64,000 nucleotides of DNA from Podarcis melisellensis (lineage: Eukaryota), in assembly GCA_964234715.1 (NCBI GenBank), contig OZ174275.1; one strand, 5' to 3'. Shown here one piece after another: positions 15,055 to 47,400 of the stretch. Made by a program: the position numbers and the translations under genes. Each line of letters starts with the position of its first letter. Positions within the stretch are counted from its first letter, which is position 1. The notes under the pieces were generated by a model. That model worked only from the letters and a program-made list of their open reading frames with translations, was not told the DNA's origin and did not search any database.

Positions 15055-18000
15055 ATAAAAATACACATTACTCTTGTCCATTAGGCCCTTGTATATGACA
15101 AAAAGCTTCATTCCATTGTTGTCTCTGGCGTTTTTCACCAGATTCTTTCTTTGCCCTTCCCACTTGCTGAAGAAAGTCTCTTTCCAAAAGGCTAGAGGAA
15201 ATATTTCTAGCCATCAAGGTCTAACAAAAAATAAAATAAAAAAATAACCATATATTCTTTGCTGAGTGATTGGCTGCTGATCACAGTAAATGAGCTGAAC
15301 TTGTAACAGCATCTCTGTCTGTCTGTCTGTCTGTCTGCAATCAACCCAAATGACACGGGACACAAGAGATTCTATCCAACATGGCACTACATTTAATCCT
15401 TACATCAGTGCAAGGATTTCTAATTGCACAATGGAACCTTCTCCCATGCACCCCCTAGATTTGTTCCATGGGTTCCATTTGTTCCATGAACACTCCTGAA
15501 AAATTTAAGGAGGGTACAAGGCATACAGTGTGGGAGGGGGAAAGGGGAGAAGGTCCCAATGTGCAAGAAGAAATCCTTGACGGGAAAGGTTAGTTGAACG
15601 TTACCCATTATGTTCCAGCTTCCTCTGGTTCAGCAAAAGCATTACTTTTGCTAATACTATATTAATTTACCGTAATTATGTACCAGCAAGGTAGGCAAAC
15701 AACAGTATGTATCAGAAGAAAATGCACTAGCTATGAAAGTCACCTCCAGGAATGTTAATGTGTCCCAAACTTTGGTTTTAAATGCAAGCAAGAAGTAGCA
15801 CTATCCTGATTGACATTCACAATACAAATCATTCCGTGCTACTGTTCAAGAGCACTTCTTAGTTAAATACCCACTATCTGAAGAAAAGAAAGTCATTTTT
15901 GTCCAGCATCTACAGGAGAAACATTTAGCTTAAGAACCACTTAAAAGAGTTAATGCACTGCTGCCTCCCTGAAGTGTTGGGAAACACAAGAGTCTCTGCT
16001 TACCCTGTAAACACAACACCACAAAATCTCAGCAAATGTGTAATGCCCCCCACACCACCTATTGTTTTTTTCATGAGGTCACGTAGGGACAAGAGGGTAC
16101 TTCCTGCACTCACCAAAACACTCATCCCACCCCTTTTCCTGTTAACTTGCCCCTGCAGGAGGGGAGAGGAGTACAAAACAGGCAGTAACCACAAGCAAAT
16201 AAGACTTGGCCAGTCTAAAACAGATTTTCAAAAACTGCCGTAAGAAAAATCTCAAGACTGGCAAGCTGTCCTTTAAGCATCCCCAACTGTAACAGGCAAA
16301 AACAAGATAGGTTGTTTACTTCAGGTCCAAGAAAAGTGGACTGAAGCTCCAGAAAAGGAAAGGAGCACAGCCCACTGGCCCGGGTGATGCTTATCTATCT
16401 GTAGAAAACCAAACTTATAATGGGGAAAAAACAAGCTGCTTTGCTGTGCTGATGCCCCAAGCTTAGTGTGAAGAGTGGGGAGGACTTGCACCTAACTGGG
16501 AGAGATGAGGGCATGAGATAACTCTGCCACTGGTCCTGAGAGAGGAACAGTCAGGGGTGCGAGAAGAAGAGATCAGGGAAACTTTCGTGCTTCCCTTGGC
16601 AACTGTCCATATCTCACATTTTAAAACCCATTGATCTAATGCAATGAACCTTACAAAACAGCTCTGTTCTAAAACAGTACAACTTATTTATATCACAGGC
16701 AGGAAATGCAGTATTAGATCCTCTACAGAGCACTGTGAGGATAAGGAACAGAGCCCACAACACCAAGATTTTGCAACACAAAACTACTTATTTGTGGCAG
16801 TTCCAGTTGCTAAACCCTGCTGCTTAGCCTGCATCAAAATCAAATCATGTGAACTAGCTCTCTCTCTGAAATTAAAGTGCTTAAAATGAGGAGCTACACT
16901 CCCTACTCACTGCTGAGAAGCCTAGAACAAGCAAACAGTTCACAATCAATTTGCAGTTCTGAAACAAATCGCTCACATTTCTGGCCAACGTGCACCACTT
17001 AGAAAGTAGCTCTCCTATCAGTCTCTGAAACCTACCTTTGAAGGGTCTTTGAAGAAAAAGCATAGAAAAACAGAACAAGCCCATAAACAAAGGCTCATTT
17101 CCTCTCAGCTAGAAAGTGAAACATGTTTTTAAGCAGAGGTTGTAAGCCTTAGTGCTGAAGGTCTGTTTCTAGCCCCTTTTACATATCCAACTCCTCCTGC
17201 CCTGCCCAGAATGGGTTAGTTAGTGTCTGTAGATGAGAAGCATGCGTCTACATCCTCATGACCAAGTTAAGAGTCTTGTATGCTTCCACTTACTTTGGCA
17301 CAACAGTCAACAACCCTCACTGACTTGCTATCTAAGGCATGTTTTAAATTCTGAACTGAGCAGCGTGAACTGTTGAGATAACCGAAGGCCACTTCAAAAT
17401 GGCTCAATGAAGCAGCAGTTTCAGGACTTGATCTGAACTAGAAATCAGTTACAGCATTCACCCCTGAAACATATCACACACAATATCAGTACATGCCTGC
17501 AGCTCAGGGAATGAAACCTCTCAGACCTGGCAACTCCAAAGGCTGCAGCACATATTGCGTGTCAAAACCCCTCCCACCAGAAAGAAAGACACAGGACACG
17601 ATGTTTAAGTTTAATGGGCATGAAATGGCCACAACTTTATTGATTATAGAATTGAAGGTATTGGCCCTAGGCATTGGCCTCTATCCGCTACCCGGCATGA
17701 TGTCCAGGAAGGGTTAACACAAACCGTGGGAGGCCCCTGTTGAAGTACGCCAACTAGGATCCCACGGGTGTCACCGCTTGGGGCGTGCCGGGGGCCCTTA
17801 CCTAGCTAGGTTTCGGACAAGACAACGCCCCTCGGAGTCCTCTACCGGACTACCCAATTTCCTCGGGGAAGGTGATGGCGTTCCTTCCCCCCCATCCATT
17901 TGCATAACAATAGAACCCCAGCCAATGCCTAACCGCCAATACAGGGAAAGTTGTGACGTTTGCTATGAGGTAGGCGAAAAAACCAACTGGTCGAAGATCG

Positions 18001-20949
18001 CCAACTTGGAAAAATTCCTACCAGGCCCCTTGCGGCGACCAACCGAAGTCCATAGCAAGGTCATGACGACCTACGGCTGCCTAAGCGTCTAAGGGTGGGT
18101 GGGATGGGAAAACCTCTCAGCTGGTCGGGAGTGAAGAGGGCGGACCCTGGGCGTGCCCGGCTTAAAATACCTTAAGCCACGCCTCCCCCCGGCCCGCCGA
18201 TAGGCGGGCAGGGTCACGAGCACGCCCAGGGATTCCCCCAATTCTCGCGGGGGCCAAGGTCAGCCCCCGCGCTTGGGGGGGGAGGGGCTAGACCGCAACC
18301 CCCTCTCCTCTCCAGGGTCGGAAATGGCTTTATGTGTGGCAGATGAACATTTATTACCATGTGTATAGGCAGTGGAAAAGAACAGACAGTTTCACCTTTC
18401 TAGTGCACACACCACATTTTTGTGTGTGTACACAGAACATTTAGGCTGCTGTCTTATGCATGTTTACTTGGGAGCAACTCAGTGGAACTTAGTTCTAAGT
18501 TAAGTATAGACAGGATTTCACTACTAATGTGTGAAGCAGCCCTTTTTCTACTTTCAATTGTACCGTGTGGCCATATTTTTCAAAAGCTGAAAATCTGAAG
18601 TTGTACTAAGGAAACACATTTCACATTCAGAAGAGATTATTCAAATGTAGTTCCTGCAGAGAGACTGAAAAGAATGCCAGCTAGTGATAAAGCTAAACTG
18701 ATGCTCAATAACAAGAATGAATTCTAAGGATGATACTCCAGGTCAGCTCTTAGCCCTTCAGTTCCTAAAAGTTCTTCTTCAAGAAACAGGATGCTGTCAC
18801 CTTCTCTTGGAGACTAGGACTTTGCGTGTTGTTAAACAATGTTCTCCAGGCATATGGGAAGGTTAAAGAGAAACACACCCATCCCCCATGAAACTATTCT
18901 GTTGAAATCCTAAGCACTTAAGACATGGAAGAGAAGGAGTGGAATTTTCCACATCTTATAAATGGGCCCAACCAATTTGTTTGCATCCCACAGTTGGAAC
19001 TATGGCACAGGGAACCAGCACAAAGGCAACTCCCAGAACAGAGGTGAGTCCAGTCAAGGTCAGGCACATGAGCTGGAGTTGTTGACCAACAGGAGCCAAG
19101 ACAAAGTACATAGAGAAAGAGAGATCTTGGGAGCTGTTGTACCAGCAAAGGTCAGTCAGAGATTGAGATGCTAGTACAGATAGATAAACTCCTTCCTAAT
19201 CAGCAGCTGACTGCATGATACAGCTGATGCCTCCTCCTCTTGAGTAGGCTTGTCCTTCTGAAGCTACCTTGCAATCACTCCTTTGTCAATTCATTAACTA
19301 CCACAGGGCTTGCCTTCATCTTAGTTCATGGGAGTTCGGCATGAAGGGGAAAGAGCCTGGGTCCATTTTACATGTGGTGCAGCAGCTCATCAGGGGCTCC
19401 AAGAGAGTCAGTGAGGTGTAAGAGTATTGGACTATGACTTGGGACTCCAGGGTTCAAATCCCCACTCAGCCCTGAAGCTCGCTGTGTGACCTTAGGCCAG
19501 TCTCCATCACTTATCATAACCTACGTCACAAGGTTGTTGTGAGGCTGAAATGTGGAGGAGGAGAGCTATGTACATCATCTTGAGCTTCTTGGAAGATAAA
19601 GGTGGTACATACATTTAACTAACTAACTAACTAACTAATTAATAAGGTGTCCTCATTATCTGGAGAGTTGGGTTGTTTAGGGCACCCTTCAAGTGTGCTG
19701 GGGCTTTCTGCAGGGTCCAAAGCCACTTGCTCAAATAAATATGCACATTTTTGTTATTTTTATTTGGTTGAAAGTAGAAAAGGAAATAAAGAAGGTGTAT
19801 TGTACGAGACCACAAGGTGGTAAGACTCGGTTTTTTCAGAGTGATGAGAACAAATTGGACAATGCTCAGGGTAACCCATGAAGACAATGTGCGGCATTTA
19901 TAGTTACCATTACTGGGTATAATTTCTAAGAGAATTGTAGTTCAGCACCACAGTAACTTAAAGGTTGGCTTCAACCATAATTCCAAACGCCCATGAGCTT
20001 CCAAAATCATGAAGCTAGATCACCCACTTACTTACTTACTTGCTCGCTAGTAGTTTGGATCTTCTATTTATTTCTTATATTTATATCCTGCCTTTCTTCC
20101 CAAGAAGAACCCAAGGCAGCTACAAATTTCCTCCAGGAGCAACAGCCAATTTCCGCAGCACTGAGTGGCTGAGAGTGCCTCACTAATCACTATTTAGTCC
20201 AAGGCTGCAGTCTGAAAGACATTTACTTTTAAAGTAAAAATGCATAGGATCTGGCTCTAAGTGCAACTGATGTTCACTATTCAGCCTCAGTCTCTTGCCT
20301 TTGGGAAGTGGGTCGTCCATGTACAGTACTTGTTGCTGAGTCCATACTGGAGGAGACAGCACCAAGGATTTCTCATCTCTAGAACAGGTGTCTGAATCCA
20401 CCAAGTAAGCAGGTCAGTAACAATGCTGTTTCCCTAGTGCAGGCAAGTCCAAAAGACAAACAAACAACACTGCGCAATCTTTTCGGCTAACTCATGGCTG
20501 TCTGATCAGATGCCTGTGTGACAGATCTTGTCTATCAGTTCAGATTTTCAAGCCCCAAAGGTCATCCCAGCAACTCTGTCAGAGCATTACAAATCTCAGG
20601 GGGTCCTCATCTGCAGGTGTGCATTACTCATTATTTACATGGCAGTGTACATTCACATCATGCTTCACAGACAGTTCCCCTTGTTTTGCTACTTAAAGCA
20701 GGCTGCAGCCTTGTCAGAAAATATATATATATTCACATGGTTGAACACAAAAGTCAATTTATTAAAGTTTATACCCCACTAACCCAAAAAGGTTCTCATG
20801 AATTTAGTACAATGCAGTAAGAAATAGTGTTTCTGTGGAGACTTGGAATGGTAGAAAGATGTAAATACTCAGAGACATGAAAGGAGGAGAGGTCACTGCT
20901 TTGGAAGGGCAAGTCTGAAGGAACACAGACATAAAAATAGAACAGGGGA

Positions 20950-24000: not shown

Positions 24001-27000
24001 CTGTCCCTTTCCCATTCCTCATAGACAAACAGAACTGTAGTGCATTATCCCTGGGAGAGCTCAGTCGGTACAGCATGAGACACTTAATCTTAGGTCATTG
24101 ATTTGAGCCCCATGCTAGGCAAAAGGCTGCAGGGGGTTGGACTAGATGACCCTTGTGATCCCTTCCAATTGAAAAATTCTATGATTCTATTATTCTACTT
24201 AGAGGGCTATCTTCTCCCATCTAAACTAATAAATAATCTGAACCTGCCTAAAAATACAAAAGGCACAAGAAGACTGCATGCACAGTTAAATTAGACCAAC
24301 CTGTCTAATCTGCAATCTATCATGAGAAAACTGGAATGTTCTAAACATTAATAAATTCCAGAATATTTGTCCAAGTTGCCTGAAATTTGGCATGGAGTAT
24401 CTATCTATACACTGAGTACCATATGGCCAAATTTCAGACGGATCCATTACAAAGATGGTTGAAATATACAAGTTTCCCTTCTTAATAATTGTTGTGCTCC
24501 CTCATAATATCTGTTTTTTCCTTGTCTCTTCGAAGGAATTCTAAATTTAAGGAAATTGCAGGGGTCCTTCCTTCTTTTGTCAAAATGCATTGTGCCTTTA
24601 TGAGTATATTACTTTTTAAATTACTACTTTAAATCCATCAGTTCAGGGTCAATCATCTTGAAAGACACAGTAAGTCCCTGATTCGAGTCTTTAGGGTGGA
24701 GCCTTTTCCCTAAGCAAAGATGGCTGCCACCAGAATAAGGGGGAAGCTGTTAAATGGCATGTAGATTACATAGCTCTAATGGCTGGACTAAAGCAAGACC
24801 ACTTTCCATTTTCAATTGCCTTTTTTTCATTGTCTCCCAGGGCAGAAGTAAGACTTGTGTGGGAAAGAGTGGGAATTAATGCCTCTCTTTACTATTAGTT
24901 TTCAGCTTTTGGGGGGGGGTAGCAGGGGGTGGGCATCCAGTTGCCAAATCATACCTACACTAAAATCCTGAATTTCTCCATTAATGTTTATGAGCTCTTC
25001 TCACCTCCATCCTAGAGGACTTAAAAAATGGCCACTGTAATGTAAACCTAGAAACTTCCTATATAACCTATGAGATTCTTTTTCATATCTCTGCAGCGTA
25101 TTGGGGGAGTGGTACATATATGTGTATCTGTTGTAACTATGTACAGTGGGGTTAAGTGAGCTTTGTTTATCATTTCAAAAGAAAATGGGGAAGAAATAAA
25201 AAACAGATTATCATTTTGTTTTCTCCTCATGTGCTCCCACACCTGCAGAAGCTTTAGTACATTAGAAAAGTCTGTATCCTTTTATTTCTGGCTGTCAATG
25301 TGCCTAAACTAAGACAGGCAGGCATGGACATGCAAGCCAGTAACTTTTGTAAACTTGTTTGCAACGCTGCCAAACAGCACATCATATCACATACAAATCC
25401 AATGTAGATGTAATTCATTAAGGGCTCTACAATGGATATGTCATAGAAGCACAGACAGCAATTATGGCTTATCTCATACCTATAAGGTTCGCTTGCACCT
25501 TTCAGTAGCAAGCATTTCAGTCTAGCCAAATCTGAAAAGAAAAAGACATCCAGATCTGAGAGATCTATCTTTGCCTGTTACTTTTTAATTTGATCCATTT
25601 TTTAAATATAATACAGCTCTCGAGTGCATGAATACCTGCATCATCCTTGATTCCCAAACATGCTGGCTGCGGCCAATGGGAATGGATTCCAACAAGAACT
25701 GGAGTGCAACATATTCCCTATCCATGCCTTGCACCGTATTGGCATTTGGTATTCAAAGGCATTTCCCTTACCTATCCAAATATCCCATAAATTGAACCTG
25801 GGATCCTCCATGTGGAAAGCATAGTATAAGGGTGGGGAAGCCTCAGGTAGCCCTCCATGCCTCTTTGTCCAGCCTTGACACACTCCCTGTGGCCCATGTC
25901 CCCATAGGGCCATGCCCCACACCTTTCTTAAGCGCACTTGTCTCTCTATAATGTGCCCTTTAACCCTGGCAATGTCTCCTGCTTGTAATGCATGGAGAGC
26001 TGTGTGGCTGTAGGTATGCAAAAAGCTCTGATTTTTTCATGATTGGAATGCAACCTACTGTACAAAGGTAAGATTTACAACCATTGCTCCACCACGTTTT
26101 GCTTCTGGCCCTGTGCACCACCGACCTTCAGGTTGAAAACAGTTCCTCCATCCCTAGCATATGCCCTACAGCTGACCTATAGGTCTCTGAGCAAAGCTTC
26201 TGGTGCCTGGTGCCTTCAGTATGTGTGTTACATTTCTCGAAAAAGGACTGGATGAGCATATTAAGAGGTAGCATGTTAATGTGTTACGCTTTGCTTTTCA
26301 GTCACAAGCTACATCATTTCCTTAAGAACCTTTGCAGTTGAAAGATCTCTTTGTCAAGGTCAGTACAGCTAGTTTTCAACATATGATCAAGCAAGTCCAA
26401 ATAAGACGATTTAGATTATTTTTTAAAAAATAATGGAAATTACCATTAAAGCAGCCCTATTCAAGTATCATGCATATCTGGAAACAGAACACATTAATGG
26501 GGAGACAAGCATAACAGCTTCATCCTTATCTGAAGCGGTGAAACTCCTATATGCTTCTAAACCCCAGCTGCAGGGAAACACAAGCAGAAAGAGTGCTGAT
26601 GCACCCATGTCCTGTTTGCAGGCTTGCCACAGACACCTGGCTGACCACTGAAAGAACAGGATACTGGGCTAGATGAGTCTTTGGCCTGATGATGCAAGGA
26701 ATTTCTTGTGTTCTGTGCTCACTGATGATCACATGCAATGTAGAACCTTGGGAAATGTGGGGAGCCTATGAGAGGAAAAGCACGTGGGTGGCAGTGGGTG
26801 GAACTAGCAACACATCCCTAAAATCCCTGCTTATGCGTTATAGATCTAGGTTTTAATAACACCTGAGCAGGGTGTACCTAGCTCCACACCCAAATTCTCA
26901 TAGTCCATTCTTTTAAAGTAGTAAATGCATAGCCCTTCTCGTTGCAAATAAAAAACTTACAAATGCAAAGCATGTGGGCTGTGCACAACCAATGGCTTTT

Positions 27001-30000
27001 TAAAGAGCTGGATATGGTATTGTAGAGCTATCATTGCCACACTGTGCCCCTCTCTATCACCCGTCGTGATTTTACTGCTTTCTGTAACATTTCAAGGAGA
27101 TACATGGCAAAAGCTGTAACTAGCCCTCCGCAGTGTAGCTACCACAACTGCATTTTTTAGTGTGACAGTAGATGCCCATGAAAAATATCCCCTTTCCCTA
27201 TCCCACCATACCTGGAGAAACTTTGGAAGCATTGTAATGTATTGTCTAAAAACAAATTTCTTGTTTAAGTAACAAAGGATATGTGCATATCCACAATGGC
27301 ACACATTTGGTTCAGGTATGGGGAACCTGACTTAAATACCGTATTGGCCAGCATATAAGCTACTCCCGAATATAAGCAGCACCTTTAATATTTGGGGGGG
27401 GGGGTGGAGAGGAAAAAAAAGACAATACCCGAATATAAGCCGCTCCCTTAAAATTCCGCAGGCACTCACACCCATTCCGTTTTATCGTATGTCTGTTTCA
27501 ACAGTGATATCGTAAAAGCCCATTTTTGTAAGGTCGCAAACTTAAGATGCACTTTAACTTTTCACGGTCGGAATTTGGGGGAAAAGGGAGGCTTATATTC
27601 AGGCCAATACGGTATGACTGTCGAAGCCTCCCTATCTGGCCAGGCAACACACCCTCCTGAGCCATACCCCTCACCAGCCCTGATTAGCACCCTTCTGAAG
27701 TGTCTTTTCCTGGATGAATGTGTCCTTGAACTCTGATAATGCTTCTTGCTTACCTGGGTGGAGGACAGAGGATGTGTGCATGCGAAAAAACTAGCCTACT
27801 GTACAAACGTAACATCCACATTTATTGCTCTGCCCACTTTCCCCTCTGGCCCCACTCATCATTAGTCTGGGGCCCCGGAAGGGAATGTGGCCCTCAGGCT
27901 GAAAACGTTTCCCACCCCAGTGCAGTTAGTTTTAAAATGTATCTGTGATTATAAATGCAGAATGTGACACCACGTACCTGCTCCTAAATTAAGAGTGTGA
28001 TACTCCTATGGGACTGAACAGCAAGGAGCCCTCATTCTGCCTATCATCAAGACAGCAAAATACATCTCTCTCTCTCTCTACATTATTGGCTCCATTTGAT
28101 GGCAATCAAACAACAACAAACACGTAGTTGTGTTACAGACCCAGTTTGGGATGGATTTGAGTGCTATACAAATGAAAATACACTTCCCAGCCCTAATTAA
28201 ATTAGCTCTACACCACTCTCTCCCCCCTTCCCCTATTCTAGCATCTAAAATAAATAAAAAAATCCAGAGGTTACAAAGAAACCAAAGTTCTGCAGTCAAG
28301 AAGGTACAGCAAGTAAGGAAATGTGTCTAGTTTAGCACAACTTCATAAAGTTTTTGAAGCTTTAGTGCTGCAGTGTGTGGGCTGCAGTGTATGAAGTCAA
28401 GATTAAGAAACATTACTTGCTATGTGATCTATCTGCACGGCTTATTTCCTATTTTGTAACTACCGTTCCCTCATGCATTGTACCCTTCTGGGATGTTCCA
28501 AGTCAAAACTGGACAGTGAAAGAAAATTTCTGACTACCATTATTTGTCCGAAAAAGGCAAACGTTATCTTCAAAGCTGGTATAAAAGTTACCTTTCAAAG
28601 AAAGCTGATTTCCAAAACATTATAAACTAGCAGAATTGGAGCAACCTGGACTCCCAGATGAGGCTCATGATAATGAAAAGTTGTACTTTACAGATAGGAC
28701 CAAGCCTGAATCCAAGAGTAGACTCTTTAAGTAGGCTGATTTTACATAGCTCATGATTTACCATGAACGTGGGAGATTTCTCCTGCTTTGTTTCCTCCCT
28801 CTGTAAGTGTGGGAGCAACAAAACACAATCCATGGCTTAGTATTATGTCTAAAGTGGGAGATCATAGTTTGGTTTGCTCAAACTTACTAGAATTGCTCAG
28901 TCTCAGGTTCATGTATCTACCATTTTTACTCTTCTCCTCCAATGCAACCATGAGAAGTTGGGAAGCAGTGTTTCTATTTTAAACTAATTGCAGTTTGTAA
29001 TTTTGTCCAAACTGTGGTTAGTTTAAACCAGCACTCCAGATTTTGTTGAACTCAAATCAGCTCTGACTACTGGTCATGGCTGGGGTTGATGGGAGTGGGA
29101 GTCTAACATCTGGAGTTACAAATGTTAGCCCCCCTGGTTTGAATTTCAGTTTGTCAAAACAAGTCAAGATCAAGTTGTGGTTTCTGATCCTGACTTGTTG
29201 GAACAAACCATAGTTAAAACAGCAGTCCCTGCTTTGGATGAAACACAGTTGGTTTAAAATGAAAGTGGATACTTCCAATTTCCTGCTTACAGCTTCATGT
29301 TCAATTGAGGAGGGGAGGGGAGGAGGAAGCAGGTTTGTGTATGGAATTCTAAACTATAATCTGTCTGAACCAGGTGAATGCCAAGAACTAAGTGATTGGT
29401 TTCATTTTGTCATGTATGAAATCATTTACCATGTTCAAAGAAAATTCTAATAGCTTCAAGGAGTAATGTGCTGGCAACTTAGGAGGAGAAAGTGTAATGT
29501 AACATTAGAAGTGAAAATTCAAAGTGACATGCTTTAGGGGAGTTGAAGCTGGTGCTTAGCAATGTCCTGACATTTAAAAACAACAACAACATTCCCTAAA
29601 CATACTTTCTCACAATTGCTTTAAAATGAAAACACAATGACAAGGTATTTAAGGAGCATCAAAGTAGATACATTTAGTGAATTCATTGGGGTTTATTTTC
29701 TAGTACGAATGGATATGATTACACAATTGATGTATAGAACACCTGCAATTCACAAATCAATCTTATGGGAAACTGCCTTATACCAAGTCTATTGAGCTCA
29801 GCATTGTTGACTAGACCAGATATTAACTGACTGTAAATATTAAAAATCAACTGAATGTGAAATAATGAAATGCCTGTATGGGGATGATGTGTATTCATTT
29901 TTGTTTCCTTACATCAAGGAACAGGACATATAGTAATATCTAGAAAGAAACAAAGTCTATTTTGCACAAGTCTCAGTGTTATTTCACACACGGGGAGAAA

Positions 30001-44400: not shown

Positions 44401-47400
44401 TTCCTCCCCCTCCCCCGCTTTTCTTTTTTTTAAAGGGGAAGTGCCATTGCAAAAATCATAGGCAAAAATACCCAGAAATCCCTCAAATTTCACCCTACTG
44501 TAAATATGTGGGTATTTGAAGAGCAAATCGATGGGCGAAAACTCACAGAAATAATTAACCAAGACCATGAGAATGTGAAGTATCTCCCAGGGCATAAGTT
44601 ACCTCCTAACGTGGTAAGTTCAATGTAACTCCTTAACTGGAGTTTCAGGTTTTAAAGGTAGTGTAGTTGGGCCATAATGCAATTCAATGTAACAAAGGCT
44701 GCTTCCACGCTGGGAATTTAGTGTACAATAGCTGCATTTTGGGTCGCTCACTTTTTATGAGGCTCGTGCTTAACGTTGTGAGCTAAACACCCTACTCCTT
44801 TTTGGATTTCTTCCACCCCCACCCCATTCCTCAAGCTTAGAAAAATCTGCCCTTTCTTTAAAAAAACATAGCAGAACAGCTGTGCAGCTTTCCCAGGAGC
44901 AGACTGAGAAGGGAATGGTACACAAAATCTATCAGAAGGATAATGCTATTGATTAAAGAGCAGCATAGGTACACACAGACATTGATATGAGTTGTGAGTT
45001 ATCTAGACTAGAGAAGAAACCCTGGCACAGCTGACAGAACAATGCAAGAACCTTGTGAGTTTTGCAATTGGTTAGGCTTAGATACATTATTTGTCTTCAA
45101 ACCTACTTGGTATTCCAGAATACTCTGAGGACCTGCAAACCATTGTGTCCCAAATTGTAGAATGTGCACAACAAAGGCAGGGCACGAGGTTGATCCCCCC
45201 CCCCCAAGTGGCTGCCAAGCTTGAGGCTCTAATCCTATACACACTTACTTGAAAGCAAGCCTCTCACCACTGGATTTATTTCTGAGCAAACATTGGTAGA
45301 ATTAGGTTGCTAAGAGAACTTCAAGAAGTTTTTCAGATGCAAAGCTTAAATCTATGTTTACTTATATATAATATAAATGTAAAAGAGTGGTTTCTTTCTC
45401 TCCAAATATTCATTTGCAGTTGAACATTGTGTTTTGATGTGAGTTAGTAGATTAATGTTATTTTGTACGGACCTCAATTCAGGACAACTGGCCATATTAA
45501 GACTGCTGCAGGAAATACTTGTGTTGCATATATGGATGTGCCTTCCTGCTTGCACAACCCCAGGAAATACACATTGCATGCTCAAAATGTGTATATATGT
45601 GAATGTCATCTCGATCCACTCTTGCCGCTATGGGAAATGCTGCTGGATAGCTGCCCTTGTTTGATTTTCAGTAATAGAATGTTTACATTTTCTTCTTCTT
45701 TTTTGTCTCAGGTTGCTGTAGCAGACCCAGCAGAAACAGTAAATGGTGCAGACATTATAATATTTGTTATACCTCATCAGTTCATTCCTAAAATCTGTCA
45801 GCAGCTAACTGGCCATGTAAAACAAGGAGCCATTGGAATTTCGCTAATCAAGGTAGTTTGTGAACCTTTCCCAAGGGGTAGGACTGGTTAGGGAGAAAAT
45901 GGAACAGTGGAATTTCCAGGGTCTTGACTGCATATAGGGTGCAGCAGGGGCACCAACCTGAATAAAATATTGTGGGGGCCCAGGTAAGCCCCACCCCACA
46001 TAATCAATAACATGTGTCACGAATATGGCTCACCTGAGCGCAGGGGAAGAGTAAGACTCAGAAATTGAGCTAAGTGAGAGACCGACTGCAGATGAGAGCT
46101 AGCTGACAGAGCCAAGAAGGGGTAGCTCAACCACCCTTCCAGAAGATGACACTGTTAGCTCTCAAGAAGCGGGAGAGTTAGGAGGCAGCCGAAGTGTTGC
46201 TAGGCAATCAGCAGATAAGCAGAGGACTGAGAGTGTGTCAAGTGGAAGTGGGGAGGGGGAAGACCAGCCTCTCAGTCCCCATTATAGGAGACTGGATAAG
46301 TTCAGAGGACAACGGAAGGGAAAGAGGGGAAGGGTGGGAATTTGGCATCCTTCTTGCTGTGAAAGGGGCGGAGGTTCAGACTGACCAACTATCGTCAATG
46401 TGAGCAGGTGAGAAGCCGTGCTGTAGATGTATGGGGTTTTTTTTGTAAATAAACGTAACATAAAATCGCTGGAGTCTCATTACTTCTTATCGGGGCATGC
46501 TTGCCTGCCTGAGATCATTATAACATGACACAGTACACACACTATTTAATGGGAATGCCCATCAATTTTTTTGGGGGGGGAGCCCCCTCAAATATTTTAT
46601 TGGGAAGGCTGAAGCCCCCATTGTCCCTAGGAGTTGGCTCCTATGGGGTGAAGACAAAATTGTTTCTAACATTGTGTTTTAATTGTTTTAACCTGCCTTG
46701 GGTGATAAATAATAGTAACTCTAGAGCACACTCCCTCTCTGCCTGCAGTTGGAATGAACCATGCCTCTGGGTTGGTTTCAAGAGCTATGGACACCCCGAG
46801 ATGCAGAACAGAAGGCAAAAGTGCCATATTTGGAAAGGACTAGTCATTTCCCCACAATATATTATTTTATTTTCTAAAGCTTATGTTATTATATAAAAAG
46901 TTGGCTATGTAACACACATCAATCTTAAGAGAAATGTACTGTGTGGGTCATAACCAAGATATATATCAACCCAACAACGTGCTGTCTGTTCCCATTATCC
47001 TTTGTTGTAAACAACTCCTGCACGGGCTCAATTTCATAGAGTAACAACAGGATCAGATCTATGTTTCATCTACTGAAGTGCAAGGAAGGCTAGTCTTACT
47101 TTTGTTCACTGCCTTCCTGTTAAACAGGGCATAGATGAAGGCCCTAAAGGACTGAAACTCATATCGGACATCATTCGAGAGAAGCTGGGCATAGAAGTCA
47201 GTGTACTCATGGGAGCCAACATCGCAAATGAAGTGGCCGATGAAAAGTTCTGTGAAACCACCATTGGTAATTCTGTGTTCAAGACTAATGACTAAACGAG
47301 GGATCAGTTCAGTCCACTTACTCAGAATATAGATCCAGAATGTTTCCCCTGCTCCACTTTGTGGTGATCTAGAAGATATATCTGTGGATCTATAGCTGCT

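Follow-up and report, generated by a model that had tools for sequence, protein, structure and literature searches.

A high-copy four-way-junction RNA module with a candidate poly(A)-clamping hairpin in a mobile-element insertion of the lizard Podarcis melisellensis

In a 64,000-nt stretch of DNA from the lizard Podarcis melisellensis (contig OZ174275.1 of assembly GCA_964234715.1), which is the whole stretch analysed here and is called the window, a 768-nt mobile-element insertion carries on its minus strand a discrete, high-copy RNA module in which four helices, P1 to P4, meet in a four-way junction. The P4 arm has two facing U tracts held open between two stems, and this is the layout of the ENE (element for nuclear expression), a hairpin known to bind poly(A) tails. 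The reading that we favour is that P4 is an ENE-type module that would clamp a poly(A) tail, to which we give a probability of roughly 0.4; the tail binding we infer from the fold, from the U tracts kept in a diverged copy and from a polyadenylation signal downstream on the same strand. The insertion and the parts of the module are as follows.

17562-18329, minus strand: mobile-element insertion of 768 nt bearing the junction, delimited by contig joints at the empty site
17555-17561, no strand: left member of an imperfect 7-letter flanking direct repeat, TTGCGTG, from contigs and sequence
18330-18336, no strand: right member of the 7-letter flanking repeat, TTATGTG, from contigs and sequence
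17954-18063, minus strand: four-way-junction RNA module P1-P4, a discrete high-copy block, from the fold and contig depth
18063-18051 pairing with 17967-17954, minus strand: P1, from the fold
18050-18041, minus strand: P2, with a UUCG loop, from the fold
18040-18024, minus strand: P3, with a GCAA loop, from the fold
18024-18050, minus strand: P2 and P3 together, short arms with an alternative pairing equal in energy, from pair probabilities
17969-18022, minus strand: P4, ENE-like hairpin, from the fold, a descriptor and comparison with the diverged copy L002
18010-18014, minus strand: 5' U tract (U5) of the P4 internal loop, from the fold; identical in L002
17977-17982, minus strand: 3' U tract (U6) of the P4 internal loop, from the fold; identical in L002

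When the minus strand of 17954-18063 was folded with ViennaRNA, the minimum free energy structure was a four-way junction of -40.3 kcal/mol, with a z of -3.5 against dinucleotide shuffles, of which 1 in 200 was as good. An earlier note on this DNA had placed four helices at these minus-strand coordinates and had described them as abutting with at most one linker U; its exact pairing came to -39.8 kcal/mol compared to the -40.3 kcal/mol of the optimum, and the fold has one U at most between helices, which confirms both statements. The junction was retained when 466 nt were folded jointly, and the fold of the plus strand was weaker (-35.8 kcal/mol, z -2.8). Pair probabilities were 0.7-1.0 in P1 and P4 and 0.24-0.48 in P2 and P3, where a rival pairing is equally stable, and U5 and U6 were both unpaired with a probability of at least 0.97. 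The layout of P4 is a lower stem of 6 bp, spacers of 2 nt, the U5/U6 internal loop, an upper stem of at least 4 bp whose two invariant C-G pairs directly abut the U tracts, and a variable apex. A descriptor of this architecture (two U tracts of at least 5, an abutting 4-bp upper stem and a G+C-rich 5-bp lower stem no more than 2 nt away) matched once in the 64-kb window and not at all in 100 dinucleotide shuffles of it. The ENE-like architecture that the note had seen in the hairpin also holds; the U tracts are open, and both they and the flanking stems are kept in a copy that has diverged by about 40%. The note had further taken the two tetraloops as a sign of selection at the RNA level; the loops are present, and the argument from them is mainly a single-sequence one; comparison adds just one hint, a read consensus of low agreement whose P3 apex is longer.

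The region 17450-18450 was overlaid with contigs of three DNA runs and with the reads of one RNA run, and the RNA reads cover the element. X1 contigs enter the element from both flanks, and long contigs of organisms B and D (X5 and X14; records 16 and 9) join 17554 straight to 18330; therefore the 768 nt are an insertion that is absent at the orthologous site in both, and by this empty-site evidence the insertion is young. The summed contig depth, which is not a copy number and can be read as a rough ratio only, was 175-500 thousand over 17926-18061, 5-22 thousand over 18062-18330 and 10-100 thousand over 17654-17925, compared to 15-120 in the single-copy flank. As a depth ratio this puts the junction block roughly at the order of 10^3 per genome, and the sequences that flank the block are 10-50 times rarer than it. 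The upstream break in depth, at 18062/18063, falls on the first base (5' end) of P1, where 30-37 contigs continue into unlike sequence, and loose contig ends are numerous at 18063 and at 17947. On the downstream side the depth falls more gradually, and many copies run into a nearby conserved motif with CCAAT on the opposite strand. There is a second depth peak of equal height at 17620-17653, which is centred on AAUAAA, and several contigs of near-single-copy depth join about 17650 to about 17947, with intervening letters possible at the joint, which suggests that there are shorter relatives that do not have the ~300 nt between these two points. In the variant table the best-supported differences and all the listed indels within the module are confined to the apex of P4 (17987-17997), the bulge of P1 (17959) and a decaying CpG (17966/17967), which in its commonest form makes a U.G wobble pair on the minus strand. 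The P1 variants listed for 17966/17967 were not taken as covariation, since they are products of CpG decay. Within the window no second copy of the element or of the junction was found by pattern, by blastn or by a covariance model with filters off.

The comparative evidence comes from L002, a 593-nt contig of an ENA metagenome assembly that was reached through P0001, a return of an exhaustive phmmer search with an artefactual open reading frame (ORF) that runs across the module. The collections searched for copies were other than vertebrate genomes. Pattern scans of metagenome contigs, prokaryote genomes and viral contigs gave one chance match only, in a phage gene (L001), word-index protein searches with the ORF artefacts of the module returned P0001 and nothing else, and none of ten small ORFs of the element was found in the collection by exact look-up. 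P0002 and P0003, which came from phmmer, were discarded as unrelated low-complexity proteins. The identity of L002 to the window is 60% in the domain interior, compared to which the 3' strand of P1 is identical in 14 of 15 columns, the lower stem of P4 in 12/12 and the two U tracts in 11/11, and over all stem and tract columns the identity is 45/50 (binomial P = 2.7e-6 at 60% background). Immediately above the U tracts the two copies have the same C-G pairs, the upper stem of P4 has one compensatory change in L002, from A-U to C-G, the spacers are AA/CG in the window and AC/CA in L002, and the apex, which is 42% identical, is shorter and unrelated in L002 yet again forms a stem. If it is the internal loop that does the work, one would expect this pattern of U tracts and stems that are kept and an apex that is free to vary. 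The part of the ENE proposal that concerns U tracts conserved and stems covarying among copies stood weakly, from two sequences, with all 11 U's identical and this single compensatory pair. At L002:365-593 (+), exactly at the P3/P4 boundary, lies a tRNA-derived short interspersed nuclear element (SINE) with an A- and B-box-like head, inside which the contig ends; this SINE was inserted just 5' of P4, which it cuts off from the other arms of the junction, and therefore the 5' strand of P1, P2 and P3 are not comparable.

Downstream of the junction on the minus strand, and in the low-copy part upstream of it, lie the features that bear on how the RNA would begin and end.

17636-17641, minus strand: AAUAAA hexamer within the second high-copy block (17620-17653), from sequence and depth
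17575-17600, minus strand: putative GU/U-rich tract, 36-61 nt downstream of the hexamer, from sequence only
17621 and 17615, minus strand: CA dinucleotides between the hexamer and the GU tract, candidate cleavage sites, read in the same way
17630-17638, pairing with 17947-17955, minus strand: 3' arm of a 9-bp long-range helix (I12) that overlaps AAUAAA, from complementarity and the 466-nt fold
17658-17678, pairing with 17921-17942, minus strand: 3' arms of two nested helices (I6 and I17; 8 and 11 bp), from complementarity and the 466-nt fold
18162-18169, minus strand: TATA-like box with a GC-box-like sequence before it, in the low-copy 5' part, by motif only

Three nested, perfectly complementary repeats close the domain 17666-17934 and all of them form in the 466-nt fold. 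They are an 8-bp helix of 17935-17942 with 17658-17665, an 11-bp helix of 17921-17931 with 17668-17678, whose arms are also in L002, and the outermost 9-bp helix, which begins right after P1 and ends within AAUAAA. As the 9-bp helix spans from the base of P1 to AAUAAA, the presumed cleavage site would come to lie about 10-20 nt from the base of the junction when the RNA is folded. In the reading that we favour, a family of squamate retroelements would have conserved the junction as a structured RNA module, which RNA polymerase II would transcribe, presumably from the minus strand. Cleavage at a putative site downstream of AAUAAA (17636-17641) would give a poly(A) tail, the tail would fold back into the U5/U6 loop where U-A.U triples would form, and the clamped tail would be hidden from deadenylases, which in turn would stabilise the element RNA. 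The P1-P3 junction would hold P4 in position, and the three nested long-range helices would place the poly(A) site within ~20 nt of the P1 base. In the apparent shorter relatives a single 9-bp hairpin containing AAUAAA may do the same job: a short relative was modelled by joining the window slices 17600-17650 and 17947-18063, mimicking the contig joints, and if the short relatives are direct joins the 9-bp helix would be a small hairpin that presents the hexamer right after the module.

ENEs described so far are hairpins with a U-rich internal loop beside G-C pairs; they take up the tail in U-A.U triples and prevent deadenylation (PMC7583470, PMC13541005). Plant and fungal retrotransposons carry them, even within long terminal repeats (LTRs), and so do stickleback retroviruses (PMC7583470, PMC13541005, PMC12501189), and in the Evade element of Arabidopsis the ENE raises transposition and the G-C pairs adjacent to the U-rich domain are reported as essential (PMC12501189). 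The ENEs of plant and fungal LTR-type elements, and those of stickleback retroviruses, are precedents for a poly(A) clamp in the element studied here. Like the single-domain viral ENEs such as the one in Kaposi's sarcoma-associated herpesvirus PAN RNA, P4 has facing U tracts, of 5 and 6 nt, between helices, with G-C pairs abutting the upper side and a polyadenylation signal downstream on the same strand; unlike them it is the arm of a four-way junction and not a free hairpin, it has a 2x2 spacer before the lower-stem G-C pairs that would take the A-minor contacts, and no curated RNA model matches it. With the ENEs of plant and fungal transposable elements (TWIFB1, Evade/Copia93) and of the stickleback retroviruses it shares a retroelement-borne U-rich loop near the RNA 3' end and a presumed benefit of RNA stability for transposition, whereas it differs from these, the double ENEs included, in having one U-rich domain and not two, a squamate host, ends that are not LTR-like and no similarity in sequence or model. 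The ENEs of MALAT1 and MEN-beta are likewise in a vertebrate genome and have a U-rich-loop hairpin next to another structured RNA, but in the element studied here there is no A-rich tract in cis after the junction, no tRNA-like substrate of RNase P turned up, and neither C nor G breaks up the U tracts.

In the R region of the HIV-1 LTR, TAR is followed by the poly(A) hairpin. The likeness to the element studied here is in the order of a structured domain and then a hairpin that partly occludes AAUAAA, and in a terminal unit with promoter and poly(A) signal; the element has no TG...CA ends and no sequence relation to HIV-1, and its junction has a U-rich loop. In the literature searched, an ENE-type element of this kind in reptiles was not found, and for mobile elements of vertebrates only the stickleback retroviruses were mentioned (PMC7583470). 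The wider claim would be that squamate retroelements have a working ENE as a four-way-junction arm beside an AAUAAA hairpin, in a portable 110-nt module with about a thousand or more copies per genome in several families with different flanks, and that this is the first class of ENE in amniote transposable elements and a new architecture; this is more tentative than the reading of P4 itself and we regard it as rather doubtful. If the module is functional, the ENE strategy of RNA stability extends to amniote transposons, the many copies offer natural variants from which the rules of the triplex can be learned, for example on the 2-nt spacer and the junction context, and the module would help account for how active these families are in squamate genomes.

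As to the class of the element, the label LTR-like given in the earlier note was not supported. The minus-strand ends are AGCC...TTGA, and in place of a perfect 4-6-bp target-site duplication there are two flanking 7-mers, TTGCGTG and TTATGTG, with 2 mismatches; the ends are not TG...CA and therefore the insertion does not qualify as a solo LTR. These ends together with the imperfect 7-mer would suit a recombinase-type or other integration. What is present, as in a solo LTR, is a promoter-like part followed by a poly(A) signal on one strand (motif matches: the TATA-like box at 18169-18162 with GC boxes, and AAUAAA at 17641-17636 with the GU-rich tract), and the junction-bearing insertion is retroelement-like. 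The TATA-like box is bracketed by a 27-nt imperfect inverted repeat at 18139-18198 (70% complementary, 6 nt apart), beside which there is a 15-nt repeat with 93% complementarity (18145-18159 with 18217-18231). Solo AB units of Ngaro retrotransposons, of the DIRS order, are on record (PMC8547959), and they too are short stand-alone terminal units with promoter-like and 3'-end-like parts, but the window is without Ngaro coding sequence or a second A or B copy, so that this link is a lead only. No transposable-element protein was found in the 64-kb window, and ARAGORN, which would bear on a tRNA-like or SINE head, finds no tRNA in it. Three other candidates were rejected: an RNA polymerase III-transcribed SINE on the minus strand, because the T5/T6 runs would terminate its transcription, a miniature inverted-repeat transposable element (MITE) with P1 as its terminal inverted repeats, because in most copies, and in L002 too, the homology runs on past the edge at low coordinates, and a B-box in the P4 apex, because it is not kept in L002. 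The note had also mentioned a similar motif in the 3' untranslated regions of reptile CR1 elements, which would have made this a module shared between LTR and non-LTR elements; nothing was found that supports it.

Several observations weigh against P4 being a poly(A) clamp. The comparison is of two sequences only, with one compensatory pair. Between the U tracts and the G-C pairs of the lower stem there is a 2x2 spacer that does not pair (AA/CG; AC/CA in L002), whereas in Evade it was adjacent G-C pairs that were essential (PMC12501189); on the upper side two invariant C-G pairs abut the tracts. No family of Rfam 15 matched at its gathering score, nor at E <= 10, whether 6 kb or 156 nt were scanned, where the presence of ENE models in Rfam was not checked, and the scan of Rfam that the note had proposed came out negative. 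In the sequence of this copy AAUAAA lies 327 nt downstream of the junction, and no poly(A)-ending reads were among the RNA reads listed. In addition, most copies (four runs, three organisms) have after 18063 a tract of ~30 nt whose plus strand is purine-rich, at first A-rich and then G-rich; it is missing from this copy, where it would lie, pyrimidine-rich on the minus strand, on the 18064-18095 side. This tract resembles a polypurine tract or an A-rich tail and would fit a plus-sense element; a polypyrimidine tract would be another possible role.

The spacer atypical of an ENE also enters into an alternative in which no tail is clamped and U-binding proteins would use the U tracts as a single-stranded platform, either an upstream element that boosts 3'-end processing at AAUAAA or a site for HuR, PTB or hnRNP C. 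U-rich upstream elements are known from retroviruses and SV40. This alternative accommodates that U5 and U6 are held open in an internal loop, that they are upstream of a same-strand AAUAAA which the folding brings near, and that both tracts are conserved when the apex is free to vary. However, matched U tracts that face each other between G-C-rich stems are what a triplex requires, and a linear binding site needs neither such geometry nor a conserved paired scaffold; we consider a protein platform unlikely.

Another question is which strand is functional. It is probably the minus strand, to which we give good though not full confidence. The only canonical hexamer with a GU-rich tract is on this strand, inside a highly conserved block. 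The minus strand also has the TATA-like box, folds better and forms the UUCG and GCAA loops, and three G.U pairs of its fold would be A.C on the plus strand. Of the RNA fragments in the family-specific parts, 8-16 have the first mate on the plus strand compared to 0-2 on the other, which means minus-strand RNA if the library is of the commonest design, as was assumed. If the plus strand were the functional one, the module would lie where a plus-sense retroelement has its 3' end, with a polypurine tract or an A-rich tail right after it, and the A6/A5 loop of the module would serve recognition or priming by reverse transcriptase or the binding of poly(A)-binding protein. The purine-rich consensus after 18063 in four runs fits this, the gradient in depth from the module to lower coordinates would fit 5' truncation of such an element, and the plus strand also beats its shuffles (z -2.8). 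But on that strand the fold is ~4.5 kcal/mol worse and the stable tetraloops are lost, the hexamer and GU-rich tract, in the other most-conserved block, are on the opposite strand, and the mate bias, if the library is of the commonest design, speaks for RNA from the minus strand, all of which makes function of the plus strand improbable. Loose-end consensus strings hint at more variants of P3 and P4; with an agreement of 0.5-0.85 they are too low to count as sequences and were left unused.

It is just as improbable, in our view, that the junction serves the genomic RNA as a signal for packaging, dimerisation or reverse transcription, with the U tracts as incidental spacers. Such a signal could be a discrete, portable and highly conserved block like this one, apparently common to families with different flanks, and could account for a perfect four-way junction whose P1-P3 are near-invariant in the best-supported variant list; in P4, however, the U tracts are the most conserved part (11/11), and the apex, which is the usual site for a protein or a kissing loop, is the least conserved. 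That a young repeat has this fold as a neutral by-product, with no RNA function, is very improbable: near-identical young copies do appear conserved without selection, and CpG decay accounts for the P1 variants listed at 17966/17967, but L002, which is ~40% diverged in the flanks, is 90% identical in stems and U tracts and has a compensatory change and a re-paired apex, and the descriptor never matches shuffles.

Elsewhere in the window, an ORF fragment at 45463-45891 (+) has a Pfam match (PF01210, E = 6e-9) to the NAD-dependent glycerol-3-phosphate dehydrogenase N-terminal domain; probably a host gene of the GPD1 type has an exon here. At 15410-15580 there is a near-perfect hairpin of ~170 nt, with weak matches to several plant miRNA-precursor models on both strands (E 0.2-8), which has the look of a palindromic repeat and may be a MITE. 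A direct repeat of 58 nt with 74% identity is found at 26054-26111 and 27795-27852, with the two members 1741 nt apart.

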